A stretch of DNA of 64,000 nt, from the IMG/VR virus record IMGVR_UViG_3300026521_000003, positions 186,001 to 250,000 of that record; one strand, given 5' to 3'. Below, in pieces: positions 1,548-53,813 of this stretch (positions within the stretch are counted from its first letter, which is position 1; every line of letters begins with the position of its first letter). The translations under genes were made by a program, and so were the position numbers. The notes beneath the pieces are model-generated. The model was given only the letters and a program-made list of their open reading frames with translations, did no database searches and was not told where the DNA came from.

Positions 1548-1979
1548 ATGCAAGACTATTTAAAAAATGTTTATAGAATACATATTGTTGATAGTCATTC
1601 ATTACCGATCAATTTAATATTAGAGGAAGTTTATCATTTATACGATACAACTGAAAGTGGTTATGATGGATGGTCAAGTAATGACAAGTCAAAAAAATCA
1701 TTAATTATTAGTCATCGTAATTGGGCTAATATAGCATTAATATCAAATCCAAAAAATAGATCTATATCTGAATTAATAGGGTATGGTGCTGAATTGGTTG
1801 AAAAATCTTTAGTTTATGACACGATAACAGATGCAACAATACAGATGGCTTTTATAGCTACAAAATTTGATGTAGGTGCAGATAAAATATATGATGTTAC
1901 TAATAATATTTTAAGTGCATCGGCTTATAAACAATTACTAAAAATATTTTATAATGATTTTCCTGAAAAAATTATTTAA
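1548..1979 (+). CDS. Hypothetical protein, C-terminal PE-tag family
   Basis: ATG at 1548 after AAGGGG; ends NDFPEKII*. Confidence 0.75.
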   Translation: MQDYLKNVYRIHIVDSHSLPINLILEEVYHLYDTTESGYDGWSSNDKSKKSLIISHRNWANIALISNPKNRSISELIGYGAELVEKSLVYDTITDATIQMAFIATKFDVGADKIYDVTNNILSASAYKQLLKIFYNDFPEKII

Positions 1980-1988
1980 GGATGAAAA

Positions 1989-2564
1989 ATGATAAGAATT
2001 GCGTTATTGGGTGCACCTGGATGTGGGAAATCGACATTAGCAGCATATGTTTTTGCTATGTTAAAAGATGAAGGATTAGATGGAGATCTCGTTCAAGAAT
2101 ATATTAGAGAACATATTAATAAGCATAAAAAAGTACCATCGATTACATTTCAATCAATAGTTTATGAGCGTCAATTAGAAAAAGAAAAGATACTGCCAAA
2201 AAACTTAGATTTCTTTGTAACAGATAGTCCTCATATTTTATCGTATGTTTATGCTGCAATGTATATAGATTATAATGATATTGATCAGGTAGAATTATTA
2301 GCGGATTTATATTTTAAATTTTTAAAAGAGAGTAGAACCGCTTATGATTTAGTTTATGTCTTGGAGCATAATCATAAACCTAATATGGAAGATGGAGTAC
2401 GATACCAATCTAAACAAGAGATGAAAATTCTTAAAAAAGGTATTCCACATTTTTTAGATATGCATAAAGTTAATTATAAAGTGTTAGATAAAGAATTGTC
2501 TACAAAAGATAGAGCTAAAAAAATAGTTAAAGATGTTAAAAAAATGCTAAAAAGTAATAAATAA
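1989..2564 (+). CDS. P-loop kinase/ATPase, NadR-like (AAA_28-type)
   Basis: Walker A GAPGCGKST, then QEYIRE, VTDSP, YDLVY and DGVR. Confidence 0.7.
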   Translation: MIRIALLGAPGCGKSTLAAYVFAMLKDEGLDGDLVQEYIREHINKHKKVPSITFQSIVYERQLEKEKILPKNLDFFVTDSPHILSYVYAAMYIDYNDIDQVELLADLYFKFLKESRTAYDLVYVLEHNHKPNMEDGVRYQSKQEMKILKKGIPHFLDMHKVNYKVLDKELSTKDRAKKIVKDVKKMLKSNK

Positions 2565-2592
2565 TACTAAAATAGTAAAGGAACATAAAAGT

Positions 2593-3237
2593 ATGAAATT
2601 AGAGCAATATATGTTTACGGAAGAAGAATATACGCAATTAGTTACAATTTTTGAAATGCAAGAAATTTTAAGAAGACCAGAATTATTAGACGAAGGATTT
2701 ATTTTAGAAGAAGGAATAACCGATACTTTTAAAAATATGATGGATACAGTTTATAAGCATTCTAATACAATTAAAAAACATGCTCATGGTGGTTTAATTT
2801 CACAAATTAAAAAAGCGACTACAAATGGATGGAAATTTTTAAAAGCTGTAGTTCAATTTTATAATAAAAAGATTACAGAAGATGAATTTAAAGCTGTATG
2901 GGAGGAATTAAAACCATCACAAAAAGAAATAATGGATTTTCTTATTAATTTAGATATGGTAACACTTCATTTAATTACCGGACCTTTACATATGATTGGA
3001 GCAATAACAGGAATTCATTTAGATCATATAGTAGCTGAAAGATTAAAAAAATCTGGAATAGAAACAGATTCTGAAGTTGGTTTGATAACAAATATTTATA
3101 ATATTGCTAAACAATTAAAAGATCGCGTTACTACAATTCTAGATGGTGAAGCAAAAGAGAAAGCTGTGGCTGCTGTAACTAATTTAGCTGCAGCACTACC
3201 AGGACCAACTCCGGAGGAATTTGGAGTTGCTTCATAA
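2593..3237 (+). CDS. Hypothetical late protein, possible head-internal protein
   Basis: AATAAATA upstream near 2557; acidic N-terminus with (L/I)xE sites. Confidence 0.6.
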   Translation: MKLEQYMFTEEEYTQLVTIFEMQEILRRPELLDEGFILEEGITDTFKNMMDTVYKHSNTIKKHAHGGLISQIKKATTNGWKFLKAVVQFYNKKITEDEFKAVWEELKPSQKEIMDFLINLDMVTLHLITGPLHMIGAITGIHLDHIVAERLKKSGIETDSEVGLITNIYNIAKQLKDRVTTILDGEAKEKAVAAVTNLAAALPGPTPEEFGVAS

Positions 3238-3282
3238 TTTATATTTTTTGTATAATTATATAAAACCAATGAAGGAATATTA

Positions 3283-3669
3283 ATGTCTAAAAATTTTGAA
3301 ATAAATTTAACACCGCAGCATGAAGAATGGATTAAGCTAATCCCAAATGCATCAAAAAATATGGATATTGTATTTAATAAACTTATTGAATATTCAATAA
3401 ACGATAATATTTTATTAGAGATTATTTCGCAAACTTTAACGGTTGCGGATTTACAAAAATTCAAAAATAGTTATTCAAAAATGCAATCAAAAAGAGCTTC
3501 GTTTATAGATGATTTAGAAATTACTAAAAAGTCTATGAAGCATATCGAAATAGTAGATGAACCAAAAATTATTGAAGATTTAGAACCTATAAAAAAAGAA
3601 ACTAAAATATCACAAAAACCAAAACAGTCTAAAAAAGTTTCTCATGGTTTTGATGAAGATACATTTTAA
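3283..3669 (+). CDS. Hypothetical protein
   Basis: ORF with AAGGA SD and upstream TGTATAAT. Confidence 0.7.
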   Translation: MSKNFEINLTPQHEEWIKLIPNASKNMDIVFNKLIEYSINDNILLEIISQTLTVADLQKFKNSYSKMQSKRASFIDDLEITKKSMKHIEIVDEPKIIEDLEPIKKETKISQKPKQSKKVSHGFDEDTF

Positions 3670-5906: not shown

Positions 5907-6272
5907 TTGTTTAAGATAAGTAATGAAGAACTTATTATTGGTGATGGTATATGGGTCTTTAAACTAGATTTATTGGCTACATCAGTTTTAGAAATAACTC
6001 ACCCTAAATACTATATTTATAAAGGCAAATATTCGGATGATATGACAGAGTATATTTTACTTACTAATAATGGTTATGAGCTAAAAATACCGGTCACTAT
6101 ATATTTTACTCATTTAGAAACAGGCAATTATATTTTAAGATCGTCAAGACAGGATATTATCTATATTCTCAAAAATATATTAAAAAATACAACTTGTGAT
6201 ATGAGTTGTAGATTCTTAACTAGAGAATATTTGAAAACAATAGAAAAGGATTTTCCAGAATGGCTGGTTTAA
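5907..6272 (+). CDS. Hypothetical protein, C-terminal PE-tag family
   Basis: Ends KDFPEWLV*. Confidence 0.7.
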   Translation: MFKISNEELIIGDGIWVFKLDLLATSVLEITHPKYYIYKGKYSDDMTEYILLTNNGYELKIPVTIYFTHLETGNYILRSSRQDIIYILKNILKNTTCDMSCRFLTREYLKTIEKDFPEWLV

Positions 6273-6778: not shown

Positions 6779-7353
6779 TGTTATTTGATTTTGAAAGGCC
6801 TTTATATACAAGACAAGATTTAACTGAATATAATATTGATAGAAATAAGTTTTATTATATCGGATTTAAAAGTGGAAATCAGATTAAATCAAGACCGATA
6901 AAAATATTAGATATATATACTGTTCGATCAACTTCCACCGGCTCTAAATATTTACGTACAGACGTAAAGTGGAAATATATTTTTGAGGTTGAATCTAAAT
7001 TTAATAGGAAAATTAGAAAATTGGATTTTTGGAAGAAAATATTTGGATCTAAAAAAATATTAGATAAACCTATTACGGAAAAATATGAAATTATTTTTCA
7101 AGAAGATTATGATATGATTAACTTTTATTTGCTTGCTGAAACTCCGGAAGAAGCGGAAGTAAAATGTTTGTTGCAATTAGAGAGAAATAATAAATTATAT
7201 AATATATCTAAAAAAATAGTTATGGAATATAAGGAATTATATCCTAATATTTTTTTAAAGGTATTAGATCAAAAATATGATAAATTATGTAATGATACCA
7301 ATTATTACAGCTTTTTCAATATTTTAGATGATACAAGGAATAAACATGGCTAG
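6778..7353 (+). CDS. Hypothetical protein (degenerate internal PE-like motif)
   Basis: GGAGG SD; contains ELYPNIFL near the C-terminus. Confidence 0.65.
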   Translation: MLFDFERPLYTRQDLTEYNIDRNKFYYIGFKSGNQIKSRPIKILDIYTVRSTSTGSKYLRTDVKWKYIFEVESKFNRKIRKLDFWKKIFGSKKILDKPITEKYEIIFQEDYDMINFYLLAETPEEAEVKCLLQLERNNKLYNISKKIVMEYKELYPNIFLKVLDQKYDKLCNDTNYYSFFNILDDTRNKHG

Positions 7354-7774
7354 TTTTTTTTCAAAGTCTAACCCTAATATTTTTACATCAAAAAATACTT
7401 TTGTACATACATTAGTTTCAGAGGTCAGAGCAAACGGTAGTATTGATTTTTGGGTATTAAATAAACAACATTTAGAAATTTATAAATTTAGAGTTATACA
7501 AATATCAGATTTTGATATAACCATTGATTTGATTAATGATTTAGCTAATGAATTTATAATGAATACAACATTTGTAATTCATATGAAAAATAAAATTGTA
7601 GAGTTGATGGATGAAATACCGGGAAAAGTATATTTAAAACGATTAGATTGTTATCGAGATTTATATAGTGGTTTGAATGAAAAACTCAAAAGAGTAAAAA
7701 GTGATGATTTACGAATAGAATTAGAAGAAAAAGTAGATTACATTGAATCTACTTTTCCAGAATTATTAATTTGA
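7328..7774 (+). CDS. Hypothetical protein, C-terminal PE-tag family
   Basis: Ends STFPELLI*; true start is probably ATG 7346. Confidence 0.7.
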   Translation: MIQGINMASFFSKSNPNIFTSKNTFVHTLVSEVRANGSIDFWVLNKQHLEIYKFRVIQISDFDITIDLINDLANEFIMNTTFVIHMKNKIVELMDEIPGKVYLKRLDCYRDLYSGLNEKLKRVKSDDLRIELEEKVDYIESTFPELLI

Positions 7775-9829: not shown

Positions 9830-10063
9830 ATGACTATTTTAGATATGGAATTGGAGCCTCTTAGTATGCATGAATTAAGTACGTTAAAATATGAATTTAC
9901 TCAAGATTTTGATAAAATGACTACAAAAGATGCATTATCATTATTACGATTGGTAGTACCAACTATTAAAAATGATAATTATGATGATGAGAAAGTAATT
10001 TTATTATTGCGTAGACTTAATATGATACTGGATTTTAAAAATAACCCAGAATTATTAATTTAA
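9830..10063 (+). CDS. Hypothetical protein, C-terminal PE-tag family
   Basis: Ends KNNPELLI*. Confidence 0.65.
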   Translation: MTILDMELEPLSMHELSTLKYEFTQDFDKMTTKDALSLLRLVVPTIKNDNYDDEKVILLLRRLNMILDFKNNPELLI

Positions 10064-33061: not shown

Positions 33062-33370
33062 ATGGGTAAAAAAAATACTGAAATGGAAATTAAAGACTTT
33101 GAATACTATTTAGTAGTTATGGATAGCAGGCAAGATTATATAATTAGTTATGGGTATGAAGAATTTCCATTAATTTTGGATATAAAATATGCCTTTGAAC
33201 AAATACCTAAAGAACCAGATCTTATAGCTGCAATTCCTGATTGGCAAAAAGTTTTTGATTATGCATCAATCGAAATTATGCCACATAAAAAATTTATTAA
33301 GTACATGCTAAAACAGGAAGAAAAAGCGTTAAAACAAGATAAAAAGAAAAAAAAGAAGAAAGGTAAATAA
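33062..33370 (+). CDS. Hypothetical protein with poly-Lys tail
   Basis: AGGAG SD. Confidence 0.65.
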   Translation: MGKKNTEMEIKDFEYYLVVMDSRQDYIISYGYEEFPLILDIKYAFEQIPKEPDLIAAIPDWQKVFDYASIEIMPHKKFIKYMLKQEEKALKQDKKKKKKKGK

Positions 33371-33708
33371 TGTATTATCATCATATGCATTATAATTACT
33401 TTTCAAATGATAATAATAATTATGAAATAAAATTTTATATTTGGACGGATTACGATGATCGTATTAGGAAATATGCTATTATTGGTGAAATTGAAACAAA
33501 ATATATAGCCTATAATGAATTTACTAAGAGTAAGTTTGCAATCGATAAAAAAGATACATATCGTAATAAAGATGATTTAAAATATGAAAAATTTAAAAAA
33601 TATACACTAAAGAAGCCTTTAAAAAGTCGAATAAAATATCTTAAAACTACAAAACAGATAGAATTTCGAGATAAATTTATGAAAGAATTTCCGGAGAAAA
33701 TATTATGA
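33370..33708 (+). CDS. Hypothetical protein, C-terminal PE-tag family
   Basis: Ends KEFPEKIL*. Confidence 0.7.
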   Translation: MYYHHMHYNYFSNDNNNYEIKFYIWTDYDDRIRKYAIIGEIETKYIAYNEFTKSKFAIDKKDTYRNKDDLKYEKFKKYTLKKPLKSRIKYLKTTKQIEFRDKFMKEFPEKIL

Positions 33709-34559: not shown

Positions 34560-35057
34560 ATGAACACATTTAACTCGGATTATGAATTTACTGATGAAGA
34601 GATAAAATATTTTAAGCAAGTGAGTTTCCAACATTCAAAGCTCAAAAGAGAAAATAAAAGACAGGAAATGATTGACGGCTATGAAGAGCCAATAGATATG
34701 AATTTTAGGAAGCTTAAGCAGGGATTAAAAGTTTTTGTTACGAATCCAAGAGGGTTAATTATCCTAGGATTTATTCGTATGGCAAAATTAAGAGATTCGT
34801 ATATTGTTGAAAATGAGGACGGTATTCCTATAACACATGAAATGTTGAATCCGAGTGCAAAAATAACAAATAATAAACCTATTGTTTTTGATATTGCGAA
34901 ACCAAATCATAGGATGATATTTTTAAGTTTTAAGGAAGCAGAATTACATTTTTTACAACCCTTGTTTGATTGGCAAGAAAGATATAATGTACCTATTCCT
35001 GAAATCTTAAATAGTGCAAAGATATTAATTTCTAAGTATCCGGAAGAATTTATATAA
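34560..35057 (+). CDS. Hypothetical protein, C-terminal PE-tag family
   Basis: Ends SKYPEEFI*. Confidence 0.7.
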   Translation: MNTFNSDYEFTDEEIKYFKQVSFQHSKLKRENKRQEMIDGYEEPIDMNFRKLKQGLKVFVTNPRGLIILGFIRMAKLRDSYIVENEDGIPITHEMLNPSAKITNNKPIVFDIAKPNHRMIFLSFKEAELHFLQPLFDWQERYNVPIPEILNSAKILISKYPEEFI

Positions 35058-35565: not shown

Positions 35566-35840
35566 TATATCAATCATGCAACGTATCTCGAGGAGATAAG
35601 GATGAATATTATACATCAATAGATCTTAGTATTCAAGATAATAAATTGGAAACTTTGTATGCGCAAAAAGTTTTTGCATTAGATACAGAAATCACAATAG
35701 TACCCAAGTCAATTTTAAATGTGCTAAAACGTTACAATAAAGATTTAATTGAGCTAATTTCAACAAAGTATCCAGAAGATGAATTACGAGGTGATTTAAT
35801 TGAATTTTCTAAGTTGATGGATGTTATAAAAGATGACTAA
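35562..35840 (+). CDS. Hypothetical protein
   Basis: Overlapping ORF in the operon. Confidence 0.6.
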   Translation: MIYQSCNVSRGDKDEYYTSIDLSIQDNKLETLYAQKVFALDTEITIVPKSILNVLKRYNKDLIELISTKYPEDELRGDLIEFSKLMDVIKDD

Positions 35841-36219
35841 AAAATATATACTTGTAAAAGATTTAATACCAAATAATGAATATTTGTATCTTTTTAGTAC
35901 ATCTGGTTCTTATAGAATTATAAAAGTTAAGTATGTAATTGATAAAAAATTTGAAGTTATTATAGAAAATGAGGAAGAATCGTTATTTTATAATGAAATA
36001 CCACTTAATTTGGAATATAATGAATTTAGTATAGATTCTGAAGAAGATGGAATTGAAAATTTATATAATCTTGATGAAGAAGAAGACATCGAAATAATGT
36101 GGGTGTTAAATACTATTAAAGATTTTAAAATAGCAACAAATATAGAATTCTCAAAGTTTTTAACATTAGTTGAAAAATTAAAAAGGGATTATCCTGAATT
36201 AATAGTTAAAGGTATCTAA
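35833..36219 (+). CDS. Hypothetical protein, PE-tag family (3-aa extension)
   Basis: Ends RDYPELIVKGI*. Confidence 0.7.
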   Translation: MTKKYILVKDLIPNNEYLYLFSTSGSYRIIKVKYVIDKKFEVIIENEEESLFYNEIPLNLEYNEFSIDSEEDGIENLYNLDEEEDIEIMWVLNTIKDFKIATNIEFSKFLTLVEKLKRDYPELIVKGI

Positions 36220-36560
36220 TGAAAAAGATTTATTTTATACATGAAAATACTTCACCAATTAAGGTTGCCGGTGTATTTGTGCAGATCCCAACAGACTACG
36301 TGGTAACAGTAGGATTTATTAAAACAGAAGAAGAGATAGCACTTTCAATGGGTGATGAACCAAAAAATACAGTTTATATGTATAATGATAATATGGCTAG
36401 AGTTGAATTACATAATTTTTTACCGGGTATTGTTTTTGATAGCTATGAAGAAGGGTGTCGAGTTTTAGTTAAAATATTAAGTACTCGTATTAAATATGAT
36501 AAAGAAATTAATAAAACTTATCTTACATTATTGGATGAATTTCCAGAAGGAGTTTTATAA
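36219..36560 (+). CDS. Hypothetical protein, C-terminal PE-tag family
   Basis: Ends DEFPEGVL*. Confidence 0.7.
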   Translation: MKKIYFIHENTSPIKVAGVFVQIPTDYVVTVGFIKTEEEIALSMGDEPKNTVYMYNDNMARVELHNFLPGIVFDSYEEGCRVLVKILSTRIKYDKEINKTYLTLLDEFPEGVL

Positions 36561-36883
36561 TGTATAAAATAGGTGATAAAGTGTGGTTTTATACTTATGA
36601 TTCTGGATTACGAAAAGTCTCGATTATTAAGATAGAAGAAAATAATGTTATTTTAGAAAATGAAGATATTCTGCCTCCTGATTTACCTTTACGAGTTCCT
36701 AAAAAAGATATTTCTTTTTCTAAAGAACGTATAGAATTGTTAGCTTTCGCTGTTAATTATAAGAAAGGTTGGCTGAAGCGAGATATAGATAGAAGTATAG
36801 AAGATAATGATATTGAACAAATAAAATATCATAGGAAAATGATGGATTTATCTATTAAGGAGTTCCCAGAATTATGGGTTTGA
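36560..36883 (+). CDS. Hypothetical protein (SH3-like N-terminus), PE-tag family
   Basis: Starts YKIGDKVW; ends KEFPELWV*. Confidence 0.7.
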   Translation: MYKIGDKVWFYTYDSGLRKVSIIKIEENNVILENEDILPPDLPLRVPKKDISFSKERIELLAFAVNYKKGWLKRDIDRSIEDNDIEQIKYHRKMMDLSIKEFPELWV

Positions 36884-37152
36884 AATCAAGTAAAAGCTTA
36901 GAACCATGTAATTGTAAAATATGTGTAAGAACAAGAAAATTTAAAGCTGTTTTAAAACGTGTAACAAATGATGAAGATAAGAAATTTTTAGAAACACTTT
37001 TTGACAGTTTAAATGATCTTGAGGATGAAATGGATTATCTTGAAATATATTTAGAAAATTTAAGAACTTTATACCCAAAAGTATATAGGGAAATCCATAC
37101 AGTTGAAAAGTTAAAAAATGGTGATGAGAATTTTCCAGAATTAAACGTATAA
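36874..37152 (+). CDS. Hypothetical protein, C-terminal PE-tag family
   Basis: CxCxxC near the N-terminus; ends ENFPELNV*. Confidence 0.7.
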   Translation: MGLKSSKSLEPCNCKICVRTRKFKAVLKRVTNDEDKKFLETLFDSLNDLEDEMDYLEIYLENLRTLYPKVYREIHTVEKLKNGDENFPELNV

Positions 37153-37169: not shown

Positions 37170-37514
37170 ATGGGTGTAGTATTAGATGGTGATAGTATAA
37201 ATGAACTTGAAGAAATGATGGATGAGTTAGATATTCCTCATTTTCCATTATTTTTATTTAATGAGCGAGATAGGACTGTCAAGGAACTTACAAAATCATA
37301 TATAGAAGATGAACTAGGTTTAGATGCATCAACTATATCATCTATATGGGAAAGCTTTGCAGAATACTTAGGACACCCAGAATTTATTATCTTTGAGGAT
37401 TCGTTATCGATGGTGAGGACATTTAAAGAACGTTTAGTAGAATTGGATCGTCTTAAACAGCAAGAAGATATTTTAAAAAGTGTATTAAAAATCTATCCAG
37501 AACATATTATTTAG
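37170..37514 (+). CDS. Hypothetical protein, PE-tag family (likely paralogue of 38104-38448)
   Basis: GGAGG SD; ends KIYPEHII*. Confidence 0.7.
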   Translation: MGVVLDGDSINELEEMMDELDIPHFPLFLFNERDRTVKELTKSYIEDELGLDASTISSIWESFAEYLGHPEFIIFEDSLSMVRTFKERLVELDRLKQQEDILKSVLKIYPEHII

Positions 37515-38103: not shown

Positions 38104-38448
38104 ATGGCGGATATTTTATCACAAGATGAGATTGATAGATTGTTGGGATTAGATTATGAACTTAGTGATTTTCCAATTTATATTATTTCTAGCAAAGGTA
38201 TTATGGAAGTTACGTTTGATTCTTTAGGTGTAGAAAGTGATTCAATTGATGAATTTGATTTAAAAAATATTCTTTCTAAAAGATTCGATATTTCAAGAGA
38301 AAATATAGAAGTTTTTAGAAGTAAATTAAATGCAATTAATGCAATTCAAAGAGAATACGAAAATACAGAAAGACTTGCGAAAAAATATAATACGGCGTTA
38401 AAAAGTTTGGAAAAATATTTTGAAGAACACCCTGAATATAAAATTTAA
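38104..38448 (+). CDS. PE-tag protein with a FliM-like N-terminal CheY-binding peptide
   Basis: Starts MADILSQDEIDRLL; ends EEHPEYKI*. Confidence 0.75.
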   Translation: MADILSQDEIDRLLGLDYELSDFPIYIISSKGIMEVTFDSLGVESDSIDEFDLKNILSKRFDISRENIEVFRSKLNAINAIQREYENTERLAKKYNTALKSLEKYFEEHPEYKI

Positions 38449-42116: not shown

Positions 42117-42668
42117 ATGCAGCGTTTATCATCAGAACACAGATCTTTATTACAAACTAATCCACTATTTTCAAAAATGATTTTTGAATTTCATGATGGG
42201 TGGTTTGAATTAATTTACGACTTGGGTATGAAAATCCTAGGTTATTGTAATGCTAAAAAAATTGAACTTCCTCAAATCCGCCAAATTAAAGAAAAATTTG
42301 GAACTCTCCGTTTTTATTATATTGATAAAACCAATGATGCACAGATTAGAGAGTGGGTTAGAGATGCTGAATCTCGATCAGAATTTATATGTGAAGAATG
42401 TGGTGAACGTGGCGAATTGAGAGTTGATAACGGCAGATGGGGAGTAGTTTGTAGTATTCATAGTTCCCCTACTTCATTATCTCTATCAGAATATCAAGAA
42501 ATGAGAACAAAAGCAGAGCATGAAGCAAGAAAATGTTCTAAATGTGGTATTGGTGGAGCAGAGATTTACTGGGATGGAGCTCAAACTATAAATTTATGTA
42601 ATCAGCATAAAGAAAATTATTCTTTATTATCTCAATATTTATCAGAACAAAAGGTTGCGGATCTATGA
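42117..42668 (+). CDS. Conserved phage hypothetical protein with Zn-binding motifs
   Basis: GWF.LI...QIKEKFGTLRFY...CEECG...CSKCG. Confidence 0.7.
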   Translation: MQRLSSEHRSLLQTNPLFSKMIFEFHDGWFELIYDLGMKILGYCNAKKIELPQIRQIKEKFGTLRFYYIDKTNDAQIREWVRDAESRSEFICEECGERGELRVDNGRWGVVCSIHSSPTSLSLSEYQEMRTKAEHEARKCSKCGIGGAEIYWDGAQTINLCNQHKENYSLLSQYLSEQKVADL

Positions 42669-42988
42669 CTGAGGCAGAAAGAAAGTTTTTATATAGTTTT
42701 AGTAATAGCATACGGGAAGCTATGTTGGAAGAACATTATATGTTGCATTTTGATGAAGAGAAAGAAGAATTTATATTTGTTTTAAGAACTGCAACAAATT
42801 GTAATACTCGGCATGCACTAACAAAAAAAGAAGTTTTAAGATGGTATTACTCGGAATTAAATAATGATGATTCTAACCTACTTAGGAATTTTTCAAATTA
42901 TTATGATTTAGAATATGATTATTTTTTATTTAAACTTAAAGAAATTATAAAAAAATATTTAAGAATATATCCGGAATATTTTGTTTAG
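42665..42988 (+). CDS. Hypothetical protein, C-terminal PE-tag family
   Basis: Ends RIYPEYFV*. Confidence 0.7.
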   Translation: MTEAERKFLYSFSNSIREAMLEEHYMLHFDEEKEEFIFVLRTATNCNTRHALTKKEVLRWYYSELNNDDSNLLRNFSNYYDLEYDYFLFKLKEIIKKYLRIYPEYFV

Positions 42989-42994
42989 GAGTAA

Positions 42995-43333
42995 ATGGTG
43001 GAAGAACGGGTTACAGGAACTTTTAAAAATATGGAACAAACATATGGTTCGATTGTTACGGAACGAACTATCAATAATGAAGTCTTATGGTCTGATACTG
43101 ATTCCATGAGAGAGTTAAGAGATCGATTAGCTACGATTCATAGTAACCAAATTGATCTTAATTTACTTGAAGAATTAAAAAGAGTATTGGCAGAACCAAT
43201 TCAAAAAACAAAAGAAGAGAGAGTTATTGATATTGTTTGTGGTGGTTTTGAAAAACATTTTAATATGTCATTAGACGAATTCAATGATATTTATAAAAAA
43301 ATTTTAGAAAATAATCCAGAAAAATTGATATGA
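42995..43333 (+). CDS. PE-tag protein carrying a PolB motif-C-like peptide
   Basis: Contains VLWSDTDS; ends ENNPEKLI*. Confidence 0.7.
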   Translation: MVEERVTGTFKNMEQTYGSIVTERTINNEVLWSDTDSMRELRDRLATIHSNQIDLNLLEELKRVLAEPIQKTKEERVIDIVCGGFEKHFNMSLDEFNDIYKKILENNPEKLI

Positions 43334-43914: not shown

Positions 43915-44508
43915 ATGATTAGAGTTGATATTCAAATGGATAAAGAAGATGCCATCAGAGCTATGCTTGATGGCTATCATATAATTGAATCTACATTACA
44001 AAGTAAAAGCGAATATAATGGTGAATATTGTACTTATATAAAAGGTACTTTTAAGCGTATTTCACCAAAAGGTATATCATTATTAAATCCGAATGATATG
44101 GTTAAAAAATATTGGACAATAGCTAAACCGGTCAAAACAATGTTTCCCAGAAAAATATATAAGACCAATTTAACTACTGGAGAAATTTTAGAATTAAATT
44201 TTGTTGATGTCTATGATAATAGATTAAATGATAAAACTATTGAGAGTATTCTAATTTATAAAACATCTAATAATATTAATCCCGAGATTACTATTTGTGC
44301 AACAGTAGGAGATTATTTTCAAAATGGAAATAGATTAGTACATTTTAAAACTAAAGGTATTTATTATACTAGGACTAATGCTGTTTTTGAACTAAAATGT
44401 CATATTGATGATATTTTAAGATTGAAGAAACTTAATAAAAAGGTTCCAAAAGCCAAACTATTATTAGTTGAGAATCTTCTAGAACATTCACCAGAATTGT
44501 TTATTTAA
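43915..44508 (+). CDS. Hypothetical protein, C-terminal PE-tag family
   Basis: Ends EHSPELFI*. Confidence 0.7.
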   Translation: MIRVDIQMDKEDAIRAMLDGYHIIESTLQSKSEYNGEYCTYIKGTFKRISPKGISLLNPNDMVKKYWTIAKPVKTMFPRKIYKTNLTTGEILELNFVDVYDNRLNDKTIESILIYKTSNNINPEITICATVGDYFQNGNRLVHFKTKGIYYTRTNAVFELKCHIDDILRLKKLNKKVPKAKLLLVENLLEHSPELFI

Positions 44509-44538: not shown

Positions 44539-44826
44539 ATGTATAATATATATGATATAGAAATGGAATTAAATAACCAAACATTATATTCCGTTCCTCA
44601 ATTAGATGGTTCTAAAGTTGAGGCAATTATTAGGATTCTTACTGAAGAGATACGAAATCTTCAGACGTTAAATTCGACTGTCGAAACATTACAAATGGAA
44701 TTAAATGCTCTAAAATTTGAACACAAAGAATTAACAAATATTGTAGAAAATATTGGATATGATTACCCTGAAATAATTTTAAAATATCCCCAATTTTTCA
44801 CACAAAAGGAAAGTATATGCGAATAG
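44539..44826 (+). CDS. Coiled-coil protein with a sub-terminal PE motif
   Basis: YDYPEIILKYPQFF near the end. Confidence 0.65.
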   Translation: MYNIYDIEMELNNQTLYSVPQLDGSKVEAIIRILTEEIRNLQTLNSTVETLQMELNALKFEHKELTNIVENIGYDYPEIILKYPQFFTQKESICE

Positions 44827-45041: not shown

Positions 45042-45047
45042 TATGCT

Positions 45048-45501: not shown

Positions 45502-45741
45502 ATGAGTATTTTAGAAAAATCATTAGAAGAATTTATTTTTCCTTTTAGTAAATTGCGATTTGAGTTATTAACTTCACCATCAAAAAATAATATAATTCAA
45601 GCAGTAGAAACGGTTAAAAGATATTTTTATTCTAATGATTATCCACACGACAAAGATTTATATTTGGATGATTTAATTGCAATAAAAAATTATATTGAAA
45701 TTAATTATCCTATTAGTAAATTTCCAGAGTATTACATATGA
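45502..45741 (+). CDS. Hypothetical protein, C-terminal PE-tag family
   Basis: Ends SKFPEYYI*. Confidence 0.7.
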   Translation: MSILEKSLEEFIFPFSKLRFELLTSPSKNNIIQAVETVKRYFYSNDYPHDKDLYLDDLIAIKNYIEINYPISKFPEYYI

Positions 45742-46106
45742 AATATTTATGGGTGCAAAAAGGTGGTGGTGATTTTAAAATAGGTAAAGATATAACTGAA
45801 TGCAATCTGAAATTTAATCCTATAAAAATTAATGTGTCGATTGATGAAGATTTTCATAGTAATATAGAATTGCTAAAGTATTTACCTGCAGGTACTGATA
45901 CGGGATCAGGTAACTTTATTATAATGTATGTTGATACTATTGAAAAAGTACGAGTAAAATGGTATAAGTTAATTATATCTCATTATAATCATTTATTATG
46001 TTTAGGAGATTTGATTAATTTATCATCTGACTGGAGTAGTAAGATAAAAGCTATAGAAGAAGAAATAATAAATCATAGAAAGGGGTATCCAGAATTATGG
46101 GTATAA
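45738..46106 (+). CDS. Hypothetical protein, C-terminal PE-tag family
   Basis: Ends KGYPELWV*. Confidence 0.7.
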   Translation: MKYLWVQKGGGDFKIGKDITECNLKFNPIKINVSIDEDFHSNIELLKYLPAGTDTGSGNFIIMYVDTIEKVRVKWYKLIISHYNHLLCLGDLINLSSDWSSKIKAIEEEIINHRKGYPELWV

Positions 46107-46342
46107 TATATGATAGATGTAACCTTTTAGCCATGATCGATAGGGTTAAAAATAAAAAATCTATAAGTGAAATAGTTGATAGATATGGTTTTTTTAATGT
46201 ACGCAAAGAGCTATTACTTATGGATGAACTCCGAAAACTACCTAGTTTTAAGGAAGATAGAACATCAAAGCGTAGAAAAGCCCGTCTTAGTGAACTTACA
46301 TCTTATTTTTCTAAAGAGGAGTATCCAGAATTATGGGTCTAA
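46097..46342 (+). CDS. Hypothetical protein, C-terminal PE-tag family
   Basis: Ends EEYPELWV*. Confidence 0.7.
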   Translation: MGIIYDRCNLLAMIDRVKNKKSISEIVDRYGFFNVRKELLLMDELRKLPSFKEDRTSKRRKARLSELTSYFSKEEYPELWV

Positions 46343-46584
46343 ATGATGATTTAGCGAAAGAATTTAAGAATATTAGTTTTATAAATCAACTATGTATGGA
46401 ATGTATATCACCTAAAAGTATTATCGATGAATTTGAGTTGATGTTTGTTCTTCAATTTGTACGTCGTACTCTAGAATATAAAAATTTTCAATTAAGTGAT
46501 AATCTTATAAAAAATTCAGAAATTGTTTATACTTATATAGTTCATTTATATCCTGTTGACCAATATCCAGAATTATGGATTTGA
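46333..46584 (+). CDS. Hypothetical protein, C-terminal PE-tag family
   Basis: Ends DQYPELWI*. Confidence 0.7.
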   Translation: MGLNDDLAKEFKNISFINQLCMECISPKSIIDEFELMFVLQFVRRTLEYKNFQLSDNLIKNSEIVYTYIVHLYPVDQYPELWI

Positions 46585-46618
46585 TATAAATAATTATAAC
46601 CCAACTAAGGTGATAATT

Positions 46619-46858
46619 ATGGAAGAATTTTACGCTAGAATATCTCAGATTCATAGTACTTTCCAACCTGATTTAAATTCTATTGCTAAGAGAGAATTAT
46701 TTTTATCAACTATTCAATGTTGCTTAATTACAAAATTTCCACTAATAGCTCATTATGATGGATTGACTATAAATTATTATGGTGATGATATTGAAATTTT
46801 AATCGATGAAGAATTAGAACAAGAGTTAAAGACTAAATACCCAGAATCATTTAAATAA
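46619..46858 (+). CDS. Hypothetical protein, C-terminal PE-tag family
   Basis: ATG 46619 after AAGGTG; ends TKYPESFK*. Confidence 0.65.
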   Translation: MEEFYARISQIHSTFQPDLNSIAKRELFLSTIQCCLITKFPLIAHYDGLTINYYGDDIEILIDEELEQELKTKYPESFK

Positions 46859-46895: not shown

Positions 46896-48899
46896 ATGAA
46901 AACATTAATATCATCGAATGTTATAAACAAATTTAAAGCTACAATTTCTGAAGATGAATATTTAGAAAAATATGAAATACTCAAAAATTATCAATCATCT
47001 AAAAATCAGATTCTAAAAATGAAAGAGACAGAATTTCAAAGTGAATTTTTATCAAGTATTTTTGGTGATGTATTGGGATATATTCCTAGAAATAAATCTA
47101 TTTCAAATCCAAATTTAATAGTTGAAAAGAAAATCGAGGAAGGGCAAAAGTATATTGACGGAGCTATAATTGATAAAAATGGACGTTCGAGAATTGTTAT
47201 TGAACTCAAAAGTACACATCACAAAGATTTATTAGTACAAAAAAATAGTAAAGGTGGATCTGGTTTGCATGGGTTAGCACCTATTCAACAAGCATCAATA
47301 TATTTGTTTTCTGAACCTCTTGCAGCATTAGCAGTAGTTTCTAATTTTGATTCATTAATAATTTTTGATAAAAAAGAATACTTTCGTCAAGAGTTTTCAT
47401 TGTTTGAAATGGATTATGAAGAATTTAAAGAATTTTATTTAATTTTGTCATCAAATAGTTTTTGGTCTGGACTAACAAAACTCATGATTGATCAAACTTC
47501 TGAATCTGATAAAAAAATTGATGATGAGTTTTTTATTAAAACGACTGCATTATACAGAATGCTTATGAATCAAATGGATAAAAAATATGCTGAAGACCTT
47601 TTTAATAAATTTTTAGCCTTAGCAATACTAGAAGATAATGGTTCATTACCTACAAATTTAATTAATAGTGTTTATGATAAAAAAGTAGATTTTACTACAA
47701 AAGGTAGCTTTTGGGATTTATGGTCTAATTTTTTAAGAGCCATGAAAAATGATACTACATGGCAAAAATCCCAAGGTATTAATGAAAATATTGTAAAAAT
47801 GGATGTGTGGCAAGATATATCATATTTTGGGAAAGTTAAAGTAAGTAAAGCTACTTTAGATTTACTATTAGAAATATCCAAATACGATTTATGGTCTATA
47901 CCGTTGGATAGATTATTTTTTGAAATATCTAAAGATATTTTTAATCCTTACAATCTAGTTGGTGGTGAAAATTCATTTGATTTATATAAAGATATAATGA
48001 ATGAAAGTAATCATGTTGCTGGTTTCCAAACACTTTCATTTGTTTGTAAACAAATTATGCCAAATGATTTTTCACTAATTAAGTTGTTTAACGAAATTTC
48101 ATCAGAAAAAATAGTTGTTATTGATTCATCTGAGAGCAAAATTATTATGGATCGAGTTTCATCATTACCAAATTATTTTTTAGTAGTTGATTTAGATACA
48201 CTTGAAGATATAGACTTTTTAAATAGTATTAAAAATGATGTTTTCACAATATCTATAACTGAAGAATATGATGAAATATTAGTTTTTATCCAAATGTCAA
48301 TTAAACCCGGTAATGATATATGTGTTCGCAGTATAGACAATAATGGAAATATCGATTATGAATATGAAATTAAAAGAGAAGAATTGGATAAATTTAAAGT
48401 TATGTCAATTAATGATAAAAAATGGTTAGATAAGTATAATGAAACTTCAACGTATAAGTTAAAAAATTTATTAGATGTATCATCAGAAGATAAAGCTACA
48501 ATTAGATTTAATTTTGACACCCAAATAGTTACATTATTTGACGCTGAATTAGGACTATGGGAACAATCTCTAGATGATTTTATTGATTCAGATAATTATA
48601 TTTACTTTACACCTAAAGTTGATCATGCTCATTTAATTTTAAAATCATCGGATTTTAAAAAATATCTTAAATTGACGTATGTTGATAAAACAAATATATT
48701 AGATATTCTAATCTCTGAAAAATTAATAAGTTCTGAGTTTTTAGAACGTGCTATAAAGCAAGAAGAATTAAGAAAACGAATTGATTTATTTGAATTAAAA
48801 TTAGATAAAATAAAACAAACCGATGATGAACTTAAAATTGTCGAATGCGAGTCTCAACTTGATAGATTGTATGAACTTGAAAATGAATACCGTGAATAG
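46896..48899 (+). CDS. Type IIG-like restriction protein: PD-(D/E)xK nuclease plus helical domain, no recognisable methyltransferase motifs
   Basis: E..FQ..FL..IFGDVLGY, IDGAI, IVIELKS, QASIY, VVSNF and EDNGSLP. No GxG SAM-binding or NPPY motif found. Confidence 0.6.
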   Translation: MKTLISSNVINKFKATISEDEYLEKYEILKNYQSSKNQILKMKETEFQSEFLSSIFGDVLGYIPRNKSISNPNLIVEKKIEEGQKYIDGAIIDKNGRSRIVIELKSTHHKDLLVQKNSKGGSGLHGLAPIQQASIYLFSEPLAALAVVSNFDSLIIFDKKEYFRQEFSLFEMDYEEFKEFYLILSSNSFWSGLTKLMIDQTSESDKKIDDEFFIKTTALYRMLMNQMDKKYAEDLFNKFLALAILEDNGSLPTNLINSVYDKKVDFTTKGSFWDLWSNFLRAMKNDTTWQKSQGINENIVKMDVWQDISYFGKVKVSKATLDLLLEISKYDLWSIPLDRLFFEISKDIFNPYNLVGGENSFDLYKDIMNESNHVAGFQTLSFVCKQIMPNDFSLIKLFNEISSEKIVVIDSSESKIIMDRVSSLPNYFLVVDLDTLEDIDFLNSIKNDVFTISITEEYDEILVFIQMSIKPGNDICVRSIDNNGNIDYEYEIKREELDKFKVMSINDKKWLDKYNETSTYKLKNLLDVSSEDKATIRFNFDTQIVTLFDAELGLWEQSLDDFIDSDNYIYFTPKVDHAHLILKSSDFKKYLKLTYVDKTNILDILISEKLISSEFLERAIKQEELRKRIDLFELKLDKIKQTDDELKIVECESQLDRLYELENEYRE

Positions 48900-49149
48900 T
48901 AATGGAAGAATATATTCCGAAGAAGTTATAGGAGATGCTATAACTTCTATGATTATACGTAAGAAAATAGGTGAAGGTACTATAACTGTTGATAAACTCT
49001 ATGAGGAATATTCATTTTTAGATATTGATTCAATAGTTGTTGATTTATTTAAAAAGGGTATTCAGGAAAATTATTCTGAGCAAACCAAAAAATTATTAGA
49101 AGAAATAAAAAATGATATTATTGAGCGGAGACCAGAAATTTGGATTTAG
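48883..49149 (+). CDS. PE-tag protein with a gp21-protease-like N-terminal motif
   Basis: MNTVNSNGRIYSEEVI; ends ERRPEIWI*. Start uncertain (48871 or 48883). Confidence 0.65.
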   Translation: MNTVNSNGRIYSEEVIGDAITSMIIRKKIGEGTITVDKLYEEYSFLDIDSIVVDLFKKGIQENYSEQTKKLLEEIKNDIIERRPEIWI

Positions 49150-50767: not shown

Positions 50768-51085
50768 ATGAAAAGAAAATGTGATATTTGTAATACTGAT
50801 TATTATGTTAAAAAATCTGATTTAGCTAGAGGATGGGGATTAACATGTAGTAAATCTTGTGCAGCTAAAAAAAGAGAAAGATCTAGGAATAACTATGATG
50901 AAACAACAGTTAAAATCAATAACCTTAAAAGAAAATTATGGTTTAACAAATATAGAAGTATTGAATTAGAACTCAGAAAGAAAAATAAAAATATGACCGA
51001 TATTGAAATTTGGGTTGAAATGTATAAGATTACAAATGATGAGATATTTTTATTTGATGAAATAAAAGATATTTTCATTTTTTAA
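50768..51085 (+). CDS. Zn-finger protein with C-terminal DIFIF tag
   Basis: CDIC...RGWG..CSKSC; ends MYKITNDEIFLFDEIKDIFIF*. Confidence 0.7.
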   Translation: MKRKCDICNTDYYVKKSDLARGWGLTCSKSCAAKKRERSRNNYDETTVKINNLKRKLWFNKYRSIELELRKKNKNMTDIEIWVEMYKITNDEIFLFDEIKDIFIF

Positions 51086-51094
51086 AGGATATTG

Positions 51095-51673
51095 ATGCAT
51101 ATAATATTAACAGATCATGTAAAAAATAGAAGAAAGAAAGGTAAGATCCCACCGCAAAGATTAATAGACTTTGCAACATATCTTATAAAAGAACACGATT
51201 TAAAAAATAAAGAAGATGGCCGATATAAGTTCCGTAGGAAATCAACATCAGCGATTATTTCTAAGAAAAAAGAAAAATTCACATTTATCACCTTTTTTGG
51301 TGGTACAGGATGGTTGATTGATTCTGATGATTTTTCCGGATTTAATTGCAAAAAACAAACGGCTGAACGAGTTAAACTTTCCATAAAAAGAAGTAAAGAG
51401 AAGAATAAAAATAAAATTATAAAAGAGATTAAACCATTACAAAACCTTAATGCTGAAATAAAAGATAAACTGAAAAGAGACACTTTCAAAATTGATAAGT
51501 TGCGGGGCACTACAAAAGTAATTCTTAAAGCTATGTTTGGTAATAATCCTGAATTTTTATTTTTATCTAAATTCAAATCATACAATTTAGTTTCAATTTT
51601 AAGAAGAGATGGTGGAATTATAAAAACGATTCACAAAAATAAACTTATAGAAATAGGAGTACTAGATGGATAG
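51095..51673 (+). CDS. Basic hypothetical protein
   Basis: AAGGA SD; Lys-rich. Confidence 0.65.
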   Translation: MHIILTDHVKNRRKKGKIPPQRLIDFATYLIKEHDLKNKEDGRYKFRRKSTSAIISKKKEKFTFITFFGGTGWLIDSDDFSGFNCKKQTAERVKLSIKRSKEKNKNKIIKEIKPLQNLNAEIKDKLKRDTFKIDKLRGTTKVILKAMFGNNPEFLFLSKFKSYNLVSILRRDGGIIKTIHKNKLIEIGVLDG

Positions 51674-52175
51674 TAATGGTTTTATAAAGATGATAGGTAA
51701 AATGCAAAATATGTGGCAACCTACATATATAGATGAAGAATATGTCAAGGTTTATAAAGATATTTGGTTTGTTGATTCTAGTTATCCTTTTGAAATAACC
51801 AGAGATTATGAAATGGTTTTAAAAAATGAAGATGAAATTTTATCTCAAATTGGTTTATTACCAAATGCTCAAAAAATGGTACAAATGATGATGAATTCAA
51901 CGTACGGTAGTTACGGAGTACCATCGTCAAGATTATATGGAAACCCTTCTCATTATTATGCTCGAACGATGTCTACCAATAATTTTTTTAAAGAGTACAA
52001 ATATGAAGAAGCAGCTAAAGTAGCACAAAATGAAAAATTGATTGCTCACTATAATCATAAAATTAAAAAAGCACCAAAGAAGAAAGAACAAGTTGAACGT
52101 CTTACAAAAATTATTGAAATGCTCGAACAAGAAAACGAAGATTTTATCACAGAATATCCAGAAAGGTTTATTTAA
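51666..52175 (+). CDS. PE-tag protein carrying a PolB motif-B-like peptide
   Basis: Contains QKMVQMMMNSTYGSYG; ends TEYPERFI*. Confidence 0.7.
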   Translation: MDSNGFIKMIGKMQNMWQPTYIDEEYVKVYKDIWFVDSSYPFEITRDYEMVLKNEDEILSQIGLLPNAQKMVQMMMNSTYGSYGVPSSRLYGNPSHYYARTMSTNNFFKEYKYEEAAKVAQNEKLIAHYNHKIKKAPKKKEQVERLTKIIEMLEQENEDFITEYPERFI

Positions 52176-52642
52176 TGAATACATCAACAAATCATGTACA
52201 TACGATTAATACGATACCACTTTATCAAGCCCAACATCATCTAACACAAAAACACCAAAGTACTGGAAGAATCAAGCGTTCTTTTAATCTTGGTTCCTCT
52301 TTCCAAACCGGATATAAATATCGGGTATTAACACGATTTCCATTTAGTGTTTCTAGACATGAGGAACTTGATGAAGTAACAGTTTTTGATTTTTTTGACC
52401 GTATTACTTATCATCTTTGTGAAACGAGATTGGAAGCTGAAAAAATAAGATTGGAAGCTTTAGAAGAACATTATGATGAACAATATAAAAAATATTTAGC
52501 AGATACTTCTAAATTTAAGCGCAAATCGTATAAATTTAATGGGTATGTTTCAGTTGATGGTTTAAAGGCCAAAAGGTTACTTAATAGATACAAAACTGAA
52601 TTGAATAATTTGGAAAAGGATCATCCAGAATGGCTAATTTGA
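52175..52642 (+). CDS. PE-tag protein (paralogue of 53355-53813)
   Basis: FPF, RLEAEK.R; ends KDHPEWLI*. Confidence 0.7.
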   Translation: MNTSTNHVHTINTIPLYQAQHHLTQKHQSTGRIKRSFNLGSSFQTGYKYRVLTRFPFSVSRHEELDEVTVFDFFDRITYHLCETRLEAEKIRLEALEEHYDEQYKKYLADTSKFKRKSYKFNGYVSVDGLKAKRLLNRYKTELNNLEKDHPEWLI

Positions 52643-52980
52643 ATCATATCTTATTGCCGGAACACCGAGGTAGAACATGGCTTAATAAATGGTGGAAAAC
52701 TACTTCTTCCATTAATGAAGAAGCGTTCGATATTATACTTGAGCGAGTTAATATTTTAATAGAACGTTTTGAAATTCCTGTACAAAATCCATCAATGCTA
52801 ACCTCTATAATGGATCGAATAATTAGGAACTACAATGCTATTGTTTATGAAGAAAATGGAGAAATTATGATAGTTGATTTATTTAATTATCAAACGGAGG
52901 ATACCTATGCTTTTGGCCTTGGTAACACACCAATATTCAATAAGTATATTTTCGATAATTACCCAGAGTTATTAGTATGA
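52630..52980 (+). CDS. Hypothetical protein, C-terminal PE-tag family
   Basis: Ends DNYPELLV*. Confidence 0.7.
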   Translation: MANLNHILLPEHRGRTWLNKWWKTTSSINEEAFDIILERVNILIERFEIPVQNPSMLTSIMDRIIRNYNAIVYEENGEIMIVDLFNYQTEDTYAFGLGNTPIFNKYIFDNYPELLV

Positions 52981-53342
52981 TTGATGTAGAAGATATAAAA
53001 CCAGGTACAGTTATTGAAATTCCATTAAACTTTAAATCGCATAATTTTAGTAATTTAGTTCCTGGTTCACTAGTACTTATTTACTATGTGAATAAATTTT
53101 TGTGTTCTGGGATTGATATGAAACGTTCAAAGATGATGGGAATGGATATATCATGGGATGATTTAAAGCAGGGAGTAATTGTAGATTTTATCCCTGAACC
53201 AGAACCACTTTTTTATCATTGGGTTGGAGAAGGAAGAACTACTTCGAGTACTGATGCAGTAGAAATTATTTTAAAAAAACAAGAATATCGAAAAAAATTA
53301 GGTTTATTAATAGCCGAATTTTATCCAGAATATACTTTATAA
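52977..53342 (+). CDS. Hypothetical protein, C-terminal PE-tag family
   Basis: Ends EFYPEYTL*. Confidence 0.7.
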   Translation: MIDVEDIKPGTVIEIPLNFKSHNFSNLVPGSLVLIYYVNKFLCSGIDMKRSKMMGMDISWDDLKQGVIVDFIPEPEPLFYHWVGEGRTTSSTDAVEIILKKQEYRKKLGLLIAEFYPEYTL

Positions 53343-53354
53343 TAAGGTTTAAAT

Positions 53355-53813
53355 ATGAGTTTAAATTCACTTAATTCTAAAATCGTATCTAGTCTAGGAG
53401 TCCCACTTTCAAAGATTAGACCTTTGAATACAACAATCACATCAGCACCACCTACGGCATCATCGATGGTGATGGGAGTAGATGTAGCATCTATGTATCC
53501 AAGTAGTACTAGTTCTTATAATTCTGGTGGAAATTTAAATTTTGGCTCTTTAATAGATGTACCATATTTAGTTTCTAAAGATTTTCCATTTAAAATAAAA
53601 GTTATTTCAAAATCGGATATTAAAACTATTCAAAATAGTTTTAGTGATATGATTGATCTTATGAGTAAGTATGATGGATATGGCTCAAGATTAGAAGCTG
53701 AGAAACAGCGTATTAAAAAACTTATAGATGCCACCGTAGATATTAGTATAGTAAAAGAATTAGAAAAATCATTAGAAAACATTGAAGTAGATCATCCAGA
53801 GTGGCTAATTTAA
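53355..53813 (+). CDS. PE-tag protein carrying a PolB motif-A-like peptide
   Basis: Contains MVMGVDVASMYPS; FPF, RLEAEKQR; ends VDHPEWLI*. Confidence 0.7.
   Translation: MSLNSLNSKIVSSLGVPLSKIRPLNTTITSAPPTASSMVMGVDVASMYPSSTSSYNSGGNLNFGSLIDVPYLVSKDFPFKIKVISKSDIKTIQNSFSDMIDLMSKYDGYGSRLEAEKQRIKKLIDATVDISIVKELEKSLENIEVDHPEWLI

Follow-up and report, generated by a model that had tools for sequence, protein, structure and literature searches.

A C-terminal Pro-Glu tail on sequence-unrelated small proteins of an uncultured jumbo phage

What makes some two dozen small phage proteins, unalike along most of their length, end in the same way? The question is posed by a 64,000-nucleotide stretch (hereafter the window; G000:C1) that covers bases 186,001-250,000 of a 289,880-bp virus record in IMG/VR (G000; 27% G+C). 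A first, sequence-only reading listed 25 open reading frames (ORFs) that end in Pro-Glu plus exactly three residues, an ending called here the PE tail, and inferred an address label that sends a library of proteins to one partner. The list, with its stop positions and tail sequences, was reproduced in full; what the tail is for is a question on which several readings compete.

The tail is fixed to the chain end and selected as a peptide

Could such an ending arise by chance? Among ORFs of at least 60 aa, the set counted both in the window and in the whole genome, PExxx directly before the stop closes 25 of the 90 on the + strand of the window and none of the 32 on the - strand. Genome-wide, Pro-Glu stands at offset 5 from the C-terminus in 28 ORFs, against 0.86 expected from composition, and at offsets 2, 3, 4, 6 or 7 in none; the hexapeptide [YFHNS]PE.[LIVFWYMK][ILV] forms the exact terminus 23 times (0.018 expected) and occurs internally 11 times (~5 expected). 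Enrichment over composition is >30-fold for the dipeptide and ~1,300-fold for the hexapeptide at the exact terminus; an origin in chance or composition, ruled out by these offset-5 and hexapeptide counts, is rejected, and the frequency check that the sequence-only reading had set for its own idea leaves that idea standing.

About 27 of the 28 ORFs are likely true members. The doubtful one, ending at 46858, closes in Lys, and because its orthologue has Leu in place of Pro it is probably a chance or decayed member, the one entry among the 25 that would fall away. The claim that all copies lie on the + strand holds in the window but fails as a property of the tail, since a relative locus (L061) has tailed genes on both strands; the bias is one of gene orientation only. 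PE proteins are 77 to 293 aa long, soluble and mildly acidic, lie within 179-240 kb of the genome and account for ~8% of its genes. The N-termini of the 25 have nothing in common, and a transmembrane-length hydrophobic stretch is found in no PE protein; with only three residues past Pro-Glu as well, a PEP-CTERM or sortase-type sorting signal was rejected.

Anchored at the C-terminus, the tail reads [YFH]PE[LYW][LWF][IV] in compact form: position -1 is I/V/L in 96% of copies, -2 is hydrophobic in 89%, -3 is L/Y/W and -6 is Y/F/H. Upstream, -7 and -8 are charged and -9/-10, -13, -17 and -20 are hydrophobic, a periodicity that points to an amphipathic helix.

Is it the peptide or the DNA that is held? 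Codons vary among the 25 tails, as had been noticed early (Pro: CCA 20, CCG 3, CCT 2; Glu: GAA 21, GAG 4). In a syntenic relative locus (L003; ~80-87% protein identity), 18 orthologue pairs keep the tail, and 10 of these use different, synonymous codons for Pro; elsewhere, 22% of the codons of identical residues differ. The next gene overlaps the tail in 10 cases, begins within 30 nucleotides (nt) in 9 and is far away or convergent in 7, and the tail is also present where that gene is >1 kb away. Synonymous change at Pro, together with the tail's independence of the distance to the next gene, places the constraint on the peptide, as the sequence-only reading had held.

Some tails also code twice. 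In six of the nine Trp-containing tails the ATG of the next gene lies within L-W (TTATGG) or E-W (GAATGG), with an overlap of 10 or 13 nt and -7/-8 codons that resemble a ribosome-binding site (RBS); the next genes that start inside preceding tails do so at window positions 6260, 36874, 46097, 46333, 49140 and 52630. Trp in the tail is mostly a by-product of the overlapping start codon.

The tail is kept in distant orthologues. In a 12-member family (52-65% identity; TFPELLI) its Phe and Pro are invariant in the 11 sequences that reach the tail, Glu is kept in 9 of these 11 and replaced by Gln in two, and no member runs past the tail; in a second family, at 31-37% identity, Pro and Glu are 2 of only 12 invariant columns. 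Both near-terminal copies reported earlier, in the ORFs ending at 36219 and 44826, exist (Table 1); in the family of the former the tail is exact in a 306-kb relative (G001), and three residues follow it in G000 and L003.

The tail is clade-wide and unevenly expanded. Three tailed genes, FPEKII (upstream of an AAA_28 gene), FPEWLV and TFPELLI, form a syntenic clade core. G001, whose capsid protein is 83% identical to that of G000, has only 5-6 tails, G002 has 3 and G003 has 1; a 20-kb locus of the 496-kb phage contig GCA_029935755.1 has tails on 9 of 35 genes, on both strands, and two further contigs have them on 4 of 35 and 3 of 24. Only 3 of the 28 G000 PE proteins have homologues in G001, and between close relatives PE proteins are 80% identical versus 87% for their neighbours; such fast turnover would be typical of host-interaction genes.

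Has the motif been met before? A 40-column profile of 47 tails returned only three weak internal matches from 1.84 billion proteins; the motif holds too little information for an unanchored search. An exact degenerate DNA pattern for YPELW[VI] plus stop gave three chance matches in IMG/VR, none at gene ends. Searches of the literature and of Pfam, PHROGs, PDB, AFDB and ESM Atlas turned up nothing that describes the motif, which agrees with the initial statement that no described family matches it.

Bodies, helical module and a second tail

If the ends are alike, are the bodies? BLASTP of body against body gave a best E of 0.001, for one pair. Iterative hidden Markov model (HMM) searches, made with the last eight residues cut and on 823 proteins from G000 and five related loci, yielded ~36 separate tail-bearing families and one paralogue pair in G000; the bodies are indeed mostly non-alignable. 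Pfam and PHROG searches of the PE proteins found nothing above cut-off, and the tail is absent from every recognisable enzyme, as first observed.

Two families had enough orthologues for modelling with AlphaFold2 (AF2). The model of the TFPELLI protein (P0003) has a predicted local distance difference test (pLDDT) score of 89 and an alpha/beta domain; that of the FPEWLV product (5907-6269) has a pLDDT of 87 and a beta-rich domain (helix limits in Table 1). In both, the tail is modelled as a helical turn (pLDDT ~63-87) contiguous with a two-helix hairpin. A fold search of PDB and AFDB with P0003 gave no match over a template-modelling (TM) score of 0.4; in ESM Atlas both models reached at most 0.5, with nearest neighbours that differ and fall in different clusters. 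Different N-terminal folds with a common hairpin-and-tail end indicate that the shared part is a C-terminal helical module and that the bodies differ, so the possibility of one divergent fold behind all bodies, which would have undone the original idea, finds no backing in either the sequence families or the two models. The extent of the motif has to be redrawn: Pro-Glu, the hydrophobic end and the helix stand, the bare short tag does not, and the conserved unit is, on these models, a helical module of ~20-40 residues. Its end is predicted to be a structured turn, which leaves room for a structural or oligomerisation role.

Two bodies hold what look like pieces of host proteins. The PE protein at 38104-38445 starts with MADILSQDEIDRLLG... 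(window 38104-38193), which nearly reproduces the N-terminal peptide of E. coli FliM (55% identity over 30 residues by direct alignment) and is kept in the L003 orthologue; in FliM, this peptide binds phospho-CheY. The FliN_N HMM had no match in the genome, and a PDB sequence search with the FliM-like protein found nothing relevant. In the PE protein at 37170-37511, residues 18-26 (window 37221-37247) read DELDIPHF, and DELDIPQF in the orthologue, where E. coli FtsZ has DYLDIPAF; the FtsZ C-terminal peptide docks FtsA, ZipA and other partners. This match is short and could be due to chance. Both peptides are putative mimics of host hub-binding peptides.

Nor is the PE tail the only exact ending in this genome. 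About 41 genes for proteins of 100-513 aa end in (Y/F)LPxE(V/I)KDIF(I/V)F, with the stop directly after the last Phe (the FIF tail). They lie at 236.7-283.5 kb of the genome (to 283,565; loci L018-L020), of which window positions 50768-63840 are the first part; five of the proteins have ankyrin repeats, a classic binder scaffold, and the rest are without a Pfam family. G001 has ~10 such genes, ending in LPEKIKNLFF plus stop, and a further relative (L067) has one, which ends in LLPKNIKDVFVF plus stop on an ankyrin-like protein. Together the two tails mark ~21% of the genes of G000.

A possible docking handle and its rivals

What, then, could the tail do? To a common docking handle with one shared partner we would give an even chance. 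The handle would be the C-terminal module, in which aromatic-Pro-Glu-three hydrophobics-COOH closes an amphipathic helix (a two-helix hairpin where modelled) and which a T4-capsid-type vent jumbo-phage clade has on many accessory proteins of unrelated sequence and fast evolution. The partner would recognise it along with the free end of the chain, and the variable bodies, two of them with copies of host-hub peptides, would bind different host targets. Three things favour such a docking module: the exact anchoring in two tail families, the presence of tails only on unannotatable, fast-evolving proteins and the binder- or bait-like bodies.

Who might the partner be? Genomic co-occurrence makes the phage's own ClpS-ClpA-ClpP the leading candidate, though taken singly an unlikely one. 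A ClpS gene (genome 159,506-159,814) is followed directly by that of a ClpA-type unfoldase of 767 aa, which has two rings and, at residue 618, a VGF loop; further genes specify a canonical ClpP, a divergent ClpP-like protein and DnaJ with its C-terminal domain, and ClpP occurs in G001 too. Jumbo phages are known to carry ClpP, ClpS and ClpA genes (PMC7824862). For Clp the tail would be a timed degron or else an adaptor tether of the kind that the SspB C-terminal peptide provides on ClpX. In a bolder version, and a less probable one, two adaptor libraries (~27 PE, ~41 FIF) would capture host proteins, such as CheY-P by way of the FliM-like peptide and FtsZ partners by way of the FtsZ-like one, while their tails plug into ClpS-ClpA-ClpP, a programmable targeted degradation of host proteins. 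What is left of the even chance goes to a host hub or another phage protein and, for a small part, to the prohead core discussed below.

Several observations weigh against a docking handle or against Clp as its partner. In the AF2 models the tail is a short, fairly confident helical turn set directly on the last helix without a linker, a geometry at least as fitting for an intramolecular cap as for a free docking peptide; classic AAA+ degrons lack structure, and the tail is unlike any known Clp degron. The three-residue extension in one family, in two lineages, implies that a free carboxylate in just that place is not a strict requirement. ClpP is common to G000 and G001, which differ fivefold in tails, so co-variation lends Clp no support, and the timing of expression is read from promoter-like motifs alone.

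How does the tail compare with terminal peptides that are already understood? It shares with ssrA-type degrons and the SspB C-terminal peptide the exact C-terminal position, the non-polar last residues and a genome that encodes ClpS, ClpA and ClpP; it differs in a sequence unlike the LAA or RRKKAI types and in being predicted as structured, without a flexible linker. ClpX-type enzymes read terminal degrons (PMC12723719), and the PE consensus and the AF2 helical turn place the tail outside both the sequence class and the unstructured state of ClpX C-motif degrons.

Carboxylate-anchored docking tails form a broader class that includes PDZ ligands, HbYX, the HslU C-terminus, the SSB C-terminal tip and the clamp-binding tails of T4 gp43, gp33 and gp55. 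What these established tails do hinges on an exact distance to the free C-terminus and on hydrophobic end residues, and one pocket takes many clients; the PE tail likewise keeps a fixed distance and ends in hydrophobics, and none of the known tails has an aromatic-Pro-Glu-hydrophobic x3 consensus. HbYX (hydrophobic-Tyr-any residue at the C-terminus) needs a penultimate Tyr, whereas PE tails mostly have L/W/F/I there and Tyr in only 2 of 28, which sets them outside that motif. Neither a PDZ domain nor a clamp was identified in the genome (the PF02916 clamp search was empty, and so was its control), and the polymerase-B fragments end in neither tail.

Encapsulin cargo-loading peptides offer another parallel, since a short C-terminal peptide there sends diverse cargo into an HK97-fold shell; they are Gly/Ser/Leu-rich and disordered, a consensus unlike the PE tail, and encapsulin cargo genes adjoin the shell gene. 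In poxviruses, ankyrin-repeat proteins end in PRANC/F-box, a domain that folds over ~50 residues and has eukaryotic Skp1 as its ligand; there a variable binder library is coupled to one machine by a shared C-terminal element, as it would be here, and the second phage tail sits on five ankyrin proteins. The phage elements are 6-11-residue termini in a bacterial virus, so the analogy is one of logic only. A further look-alike, the IDEAL domain of Bacillota proteins, was suggested by language-model features for one PE protein (window 36560-36880; score 0.86, 185 features); the domain (PF08858) had no match at E up to 0.1 among the 25 proteins, and the lead, not reproduced in two other PE proteins (one as its C-terminal 58 residues, one whole), was dropped.

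Could the tail instead serve the protein that carries it? This is the main rival of a docking handle, a tentative reading that we rate clearly lower: as a structural cap or oligomerisation module, without a common external partner, the tail would close the C-terminal helical hairpin and stabilise the small proteins or assemble them into dimers or tetramers. Pro and Glu would start the last helical turn, the hydrophobics would pack on the amphipathic helix, and oligomers may present N-terminal baits with avidity. The contiguous AF2 turn in both modelled families fits a cap, as do the hydrophobic positions -6, -9/-10, -13, -17 and -20, which suggest one packed face, the tolerated three-residue extension and the liability that exposed hydrophobic C-termini would be. 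Yet ordinary domain families have ragged C-termini, and here 27 of ~30 copies end exactly three residues past Glu; the genome's other, unrelated tail is just as exact; and a cap leaves unexplained why the same end is found on ~26 unrelated bodies and on no enzyme or structural protein.

An improbable alternative makes the prohead core the partner and the tail, or helix plus tail, a capsid-targeting signal that sends proteins into the head for injection with the DNA, by analogy with T4; the prohead protease may then clip after Glu. In T-even phages a short terminal peptide, the capsid-targeting sequence (CTS), is found on polymorphic internal proteins, hypervariable small proteins whose bodies act on the host (PMC3012670). 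The likeness is a short conserved terminal peptide on otherwise unrelated small proteins of a T4-type phage. The CTS is N-terminal, ~10 residues long, cut off by the prohead protease and found on a handful of genes, whereas the PE tail is at the extreme C-terminus, differs in sequence and marks ~27 genes; no N-terminal peptide of ~10 residues such as the CTS was found on PE proteins. The phage does encode T4-type Gp23, Gp20 and an S77 prohead protease, and aromatic-Pro-Glu loosely matches the hydrophobic-x-Glu cleavage pattern of T4 gp21. One PE protein, at 53355-53810, matches the phiKZ-like internal head proteins (PF12699) below the curated cut-off, with 21.3 bits over 54 residues against 27. 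Against capsid targeting, a maturation that took off just three residues would be unusual.

Gene context and promoter-like motifs also bear on capsid targeting, on both sides. Against it, TGTATAAT, an extended -10 motif of sigma-70 type, stands 27-40 nt upstream of several + strand operons with PE genes, which lie among enzyme genes and outside the structural module; TATAAATA, the T4 late-promoter motif, stands 25-60 nt upstream of capsid and other structural genes genome-wide and also lies upstream of some FIF genes, and a motif scan of the genome never found it directly upstream of a PE gene. In favour of capsid targeting, the long operon beginning at 31599 is preceded by both motifs in tandem, TGTATAAT and the late-type TATAAATA. 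The motifs are consensus matches, whose spacing to gene starts is non-random but does not prove timing.

Might the tail be the last recognisable remnant of a single ancestor, and its carriers paralogues that have diverged very far? Divergence is rapid in phage multigene families, all copies are clustered at 179-240 kb, both modelled members run in the order body, hairpin, tail, and one paralogue pair can still be detected. Nevertheless, we consider common descent highly improbable: lengths span 77 to 293 aa, the families have no profile links to one another, the two models differ in N-terminal fold and have non-overlapping structural neighbours, and three families are each conserved across the clade as distinct orthologous groups.

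Barely conceivable, and already largely refuted, is a nucleotide-level signal (translational coupling, with the tail supplying an RBS or start codon for what follows, or some other role of the DNA or RNA) with the peptide as by-product: although an overlap of 4 nt or more with the following gene is seen in 10 of 28 tails, the embedded ATG coincides with Trp in most Trp tails, the -7/-8 codons there are purine-rich and Shine-Dalgarno-like, and Pro is CCA in 20 of 25 tails versus 48% in the background, Pro third positions are free to change between orthologues, the tail is equally present with the next gene 50 to 2,214 nt off or convergent, the amino-acid pattern is held through different codons in orthologues 31-65% identical, and an RNA function needs no strict in-frame spacing to the stop.

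The phage, the window and the meaning of the tail

Which phage uses these tails? CheckV estimates the record to be 87% complete. Pfam matches outside the window, on large proteins, include the T4-type virion genes for Gp23 capsid, Gp20 portal, S77 prohead protease, gp25-type baseplate and gp15; further matches are ribonucleotide reductase, topoisomerase, NAD-dependent ligase, DnaJ, flagellin, three ankyrin proteins and a TnpB-like gene. With cultured jumbo phages (Sinorhizobium Phosso, Vibrio 2.275.O and the E. coli 121Q/Rak2-like group) the capsid protein shares no more than 32-35% identity, which marks an uncultured lineage. GenBank phages gave neither near-identical DNA nor a protein match, and two PE-linked queries had no match in related-locus searches of IMG/VR and of GTDB genomes.

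The DNA is present in sequencing runs from hydrothermal-vent, epibiont and biofilm samples. A Campylobacterota host, suggested by habitat and base composition, is only a guess; the phage ClpP, 46-49% identical to proteins of actinomycetes, is uninformative on this point, and the loci scanned contain no tRNA or tmRNA genes. A vent-biofilm metatranscriptome holds short contigs identical to window positions 44891-45090, 46196-46610, 47562-47763, 48815-49004 and 49682-49905, three PE genes included; they are compatible with transcription in situ but are not proof of it, as DNA carry-over is possible.

Other genes surround the PE genes (Table 1). Among them are auxiliary enzymes: threonyl-tRNA-synthetase-like (29390-30619), Tpt1/KptA RNA 2'-phosphotransferase (33993-34550), cytidylyltransferase-like (35068-35562), CYTH domain (39003-39470), RNase HII (49140-49736) and the AAA_28 ATPase (1989-2561), a mix that hints at RNA repair or NAD-related functions. 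An 883-aa protein with five Big_9/cadherin-like repeats (13296-15947, - strand) lies in a - strand block of very large genes, with neighbours of 1,174 and 1,501 aa, and is probably a fibre or adhesin. For a family-B DNA polymerase the sole signal is sub-threshold, in a 267-aa ORF at genome 3,840-5,977 (locus L005/L069) with several short ORFs adjacent; the polymerase gene may be split or interrupted.

Table 1. PE-tail genes, related copies, promoter-like motifs and Clp/DnaJ loci (window positions unless marked as genome; tails are written up to the stop codon)
Feature	Position	Strand	Remarks
PE tail FPEKII	1548..1979	+	clade core family; always just upstream of AAA_28 gene
PE tail FPEWLV	5907..6272	+	core family; AF2: beta domain, helical hairpin 81-93/99-115, PE turn
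PE tail FPELLI	7328..7774	+	core family; AF2: alpha/beta domain, helical hairpin 99-116/120-136, PE turn 138-141
PE tail NPELLI	9830..10063	+	G001 orthologue ends YPERLI
PE tail FPEKIL	33370..33708	+	
PE tail YPEEFI	34560..35057	+	
Near-terminal copy DYPELIVKGI	35833..36219	+	body homologue in G001 exact at the end: NPEWLI
PE tail FPEGVL	36219..36560	+	
PE tail FPELWV	36560..36883	+	stop region shares 10 nt with start of next gene; IDEAL-like by language-model features only
PE tail FPELNV	36874..37152	+	
PE tail YPEHII	37170..37514	+	residues 18-26 (DELDIPHF) FtsZ C-terminal-peptide-like
PE tail HPEYKI	38104..38448	+	N-terminus a near copy of the FliM CheY-P-binding peptide
PE tail YPEYFV	42665..42988	+	
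PE tail NPEKLI	42995..43333	+	
PE tail SPELFI	43915..44508	+	197 aa; tail kept in 85%-identical orthologue P0002
Internal copy YPEIIL	44539..44826	+	14 residues from stop
PE tail FPEYYI	45502..45741	+	
PE tail YPELWV	45738..46106	+	
PE tail YPELWV	46097..46342	+	short exact RNA-library contigs on gene
PE tail YPELWI	46333..46584	+	without L003 orthologue
Doubtful member YPESFK	46556..46858	+	orthologue YLESFN
PE tail RPEIWI	48823..49149	+	
PE tail YPERFI	51666..52175	+	
PE tail HPEWLI	52175..52642	+	paralogue pair with ORF ending 53813, sole detectable pair
PE tail YPELLV	52630..52980	+	
PE tail YPEYTL	52977..53342	+	
PE tail HPEWLI	53355..53813	+	phiKZ_IP match sub-threshold (21.3 bits, cut-off 27)
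TGTATAAT sites	3249, 29359, 31535, 39467, 42085, 44512, 46859		consensus match
TATAAATA sites	30938, 31557, 41641, 53837		consensus match
Clp/DnaJ locus L015	genome 159,506-162,132		outside window
Clp/DnaJ locus L008	genome 61,084-61,716	-	outside window
Clp/DnaJ locus L005	genome 18,285-19,112		outside window

Why does a six-residue ending matter? In large phages, most of the small early or accessory genes defy annotation ('dark matter'), and a tail common to ~8% of the genes provides a handle for pulling down a shared partner and, via that partner, the whole effector set. Should the tail prove to be a structural cap, it would still define a type of C-terminal module not described before, which dozens of unrelated families share in this deep-sea phage clade. 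If it is a docking or degradation handle, it would represent a new class of short linear motif in bacterial viruses, could be of use in biotechnology as a portable tag and would help to predict host-targeting effectors in uncultured phages; and targeted degradation of host proteins, if true, would be a prokaryotic counterpart of the poxvirus ankyrin/F-box proteins.

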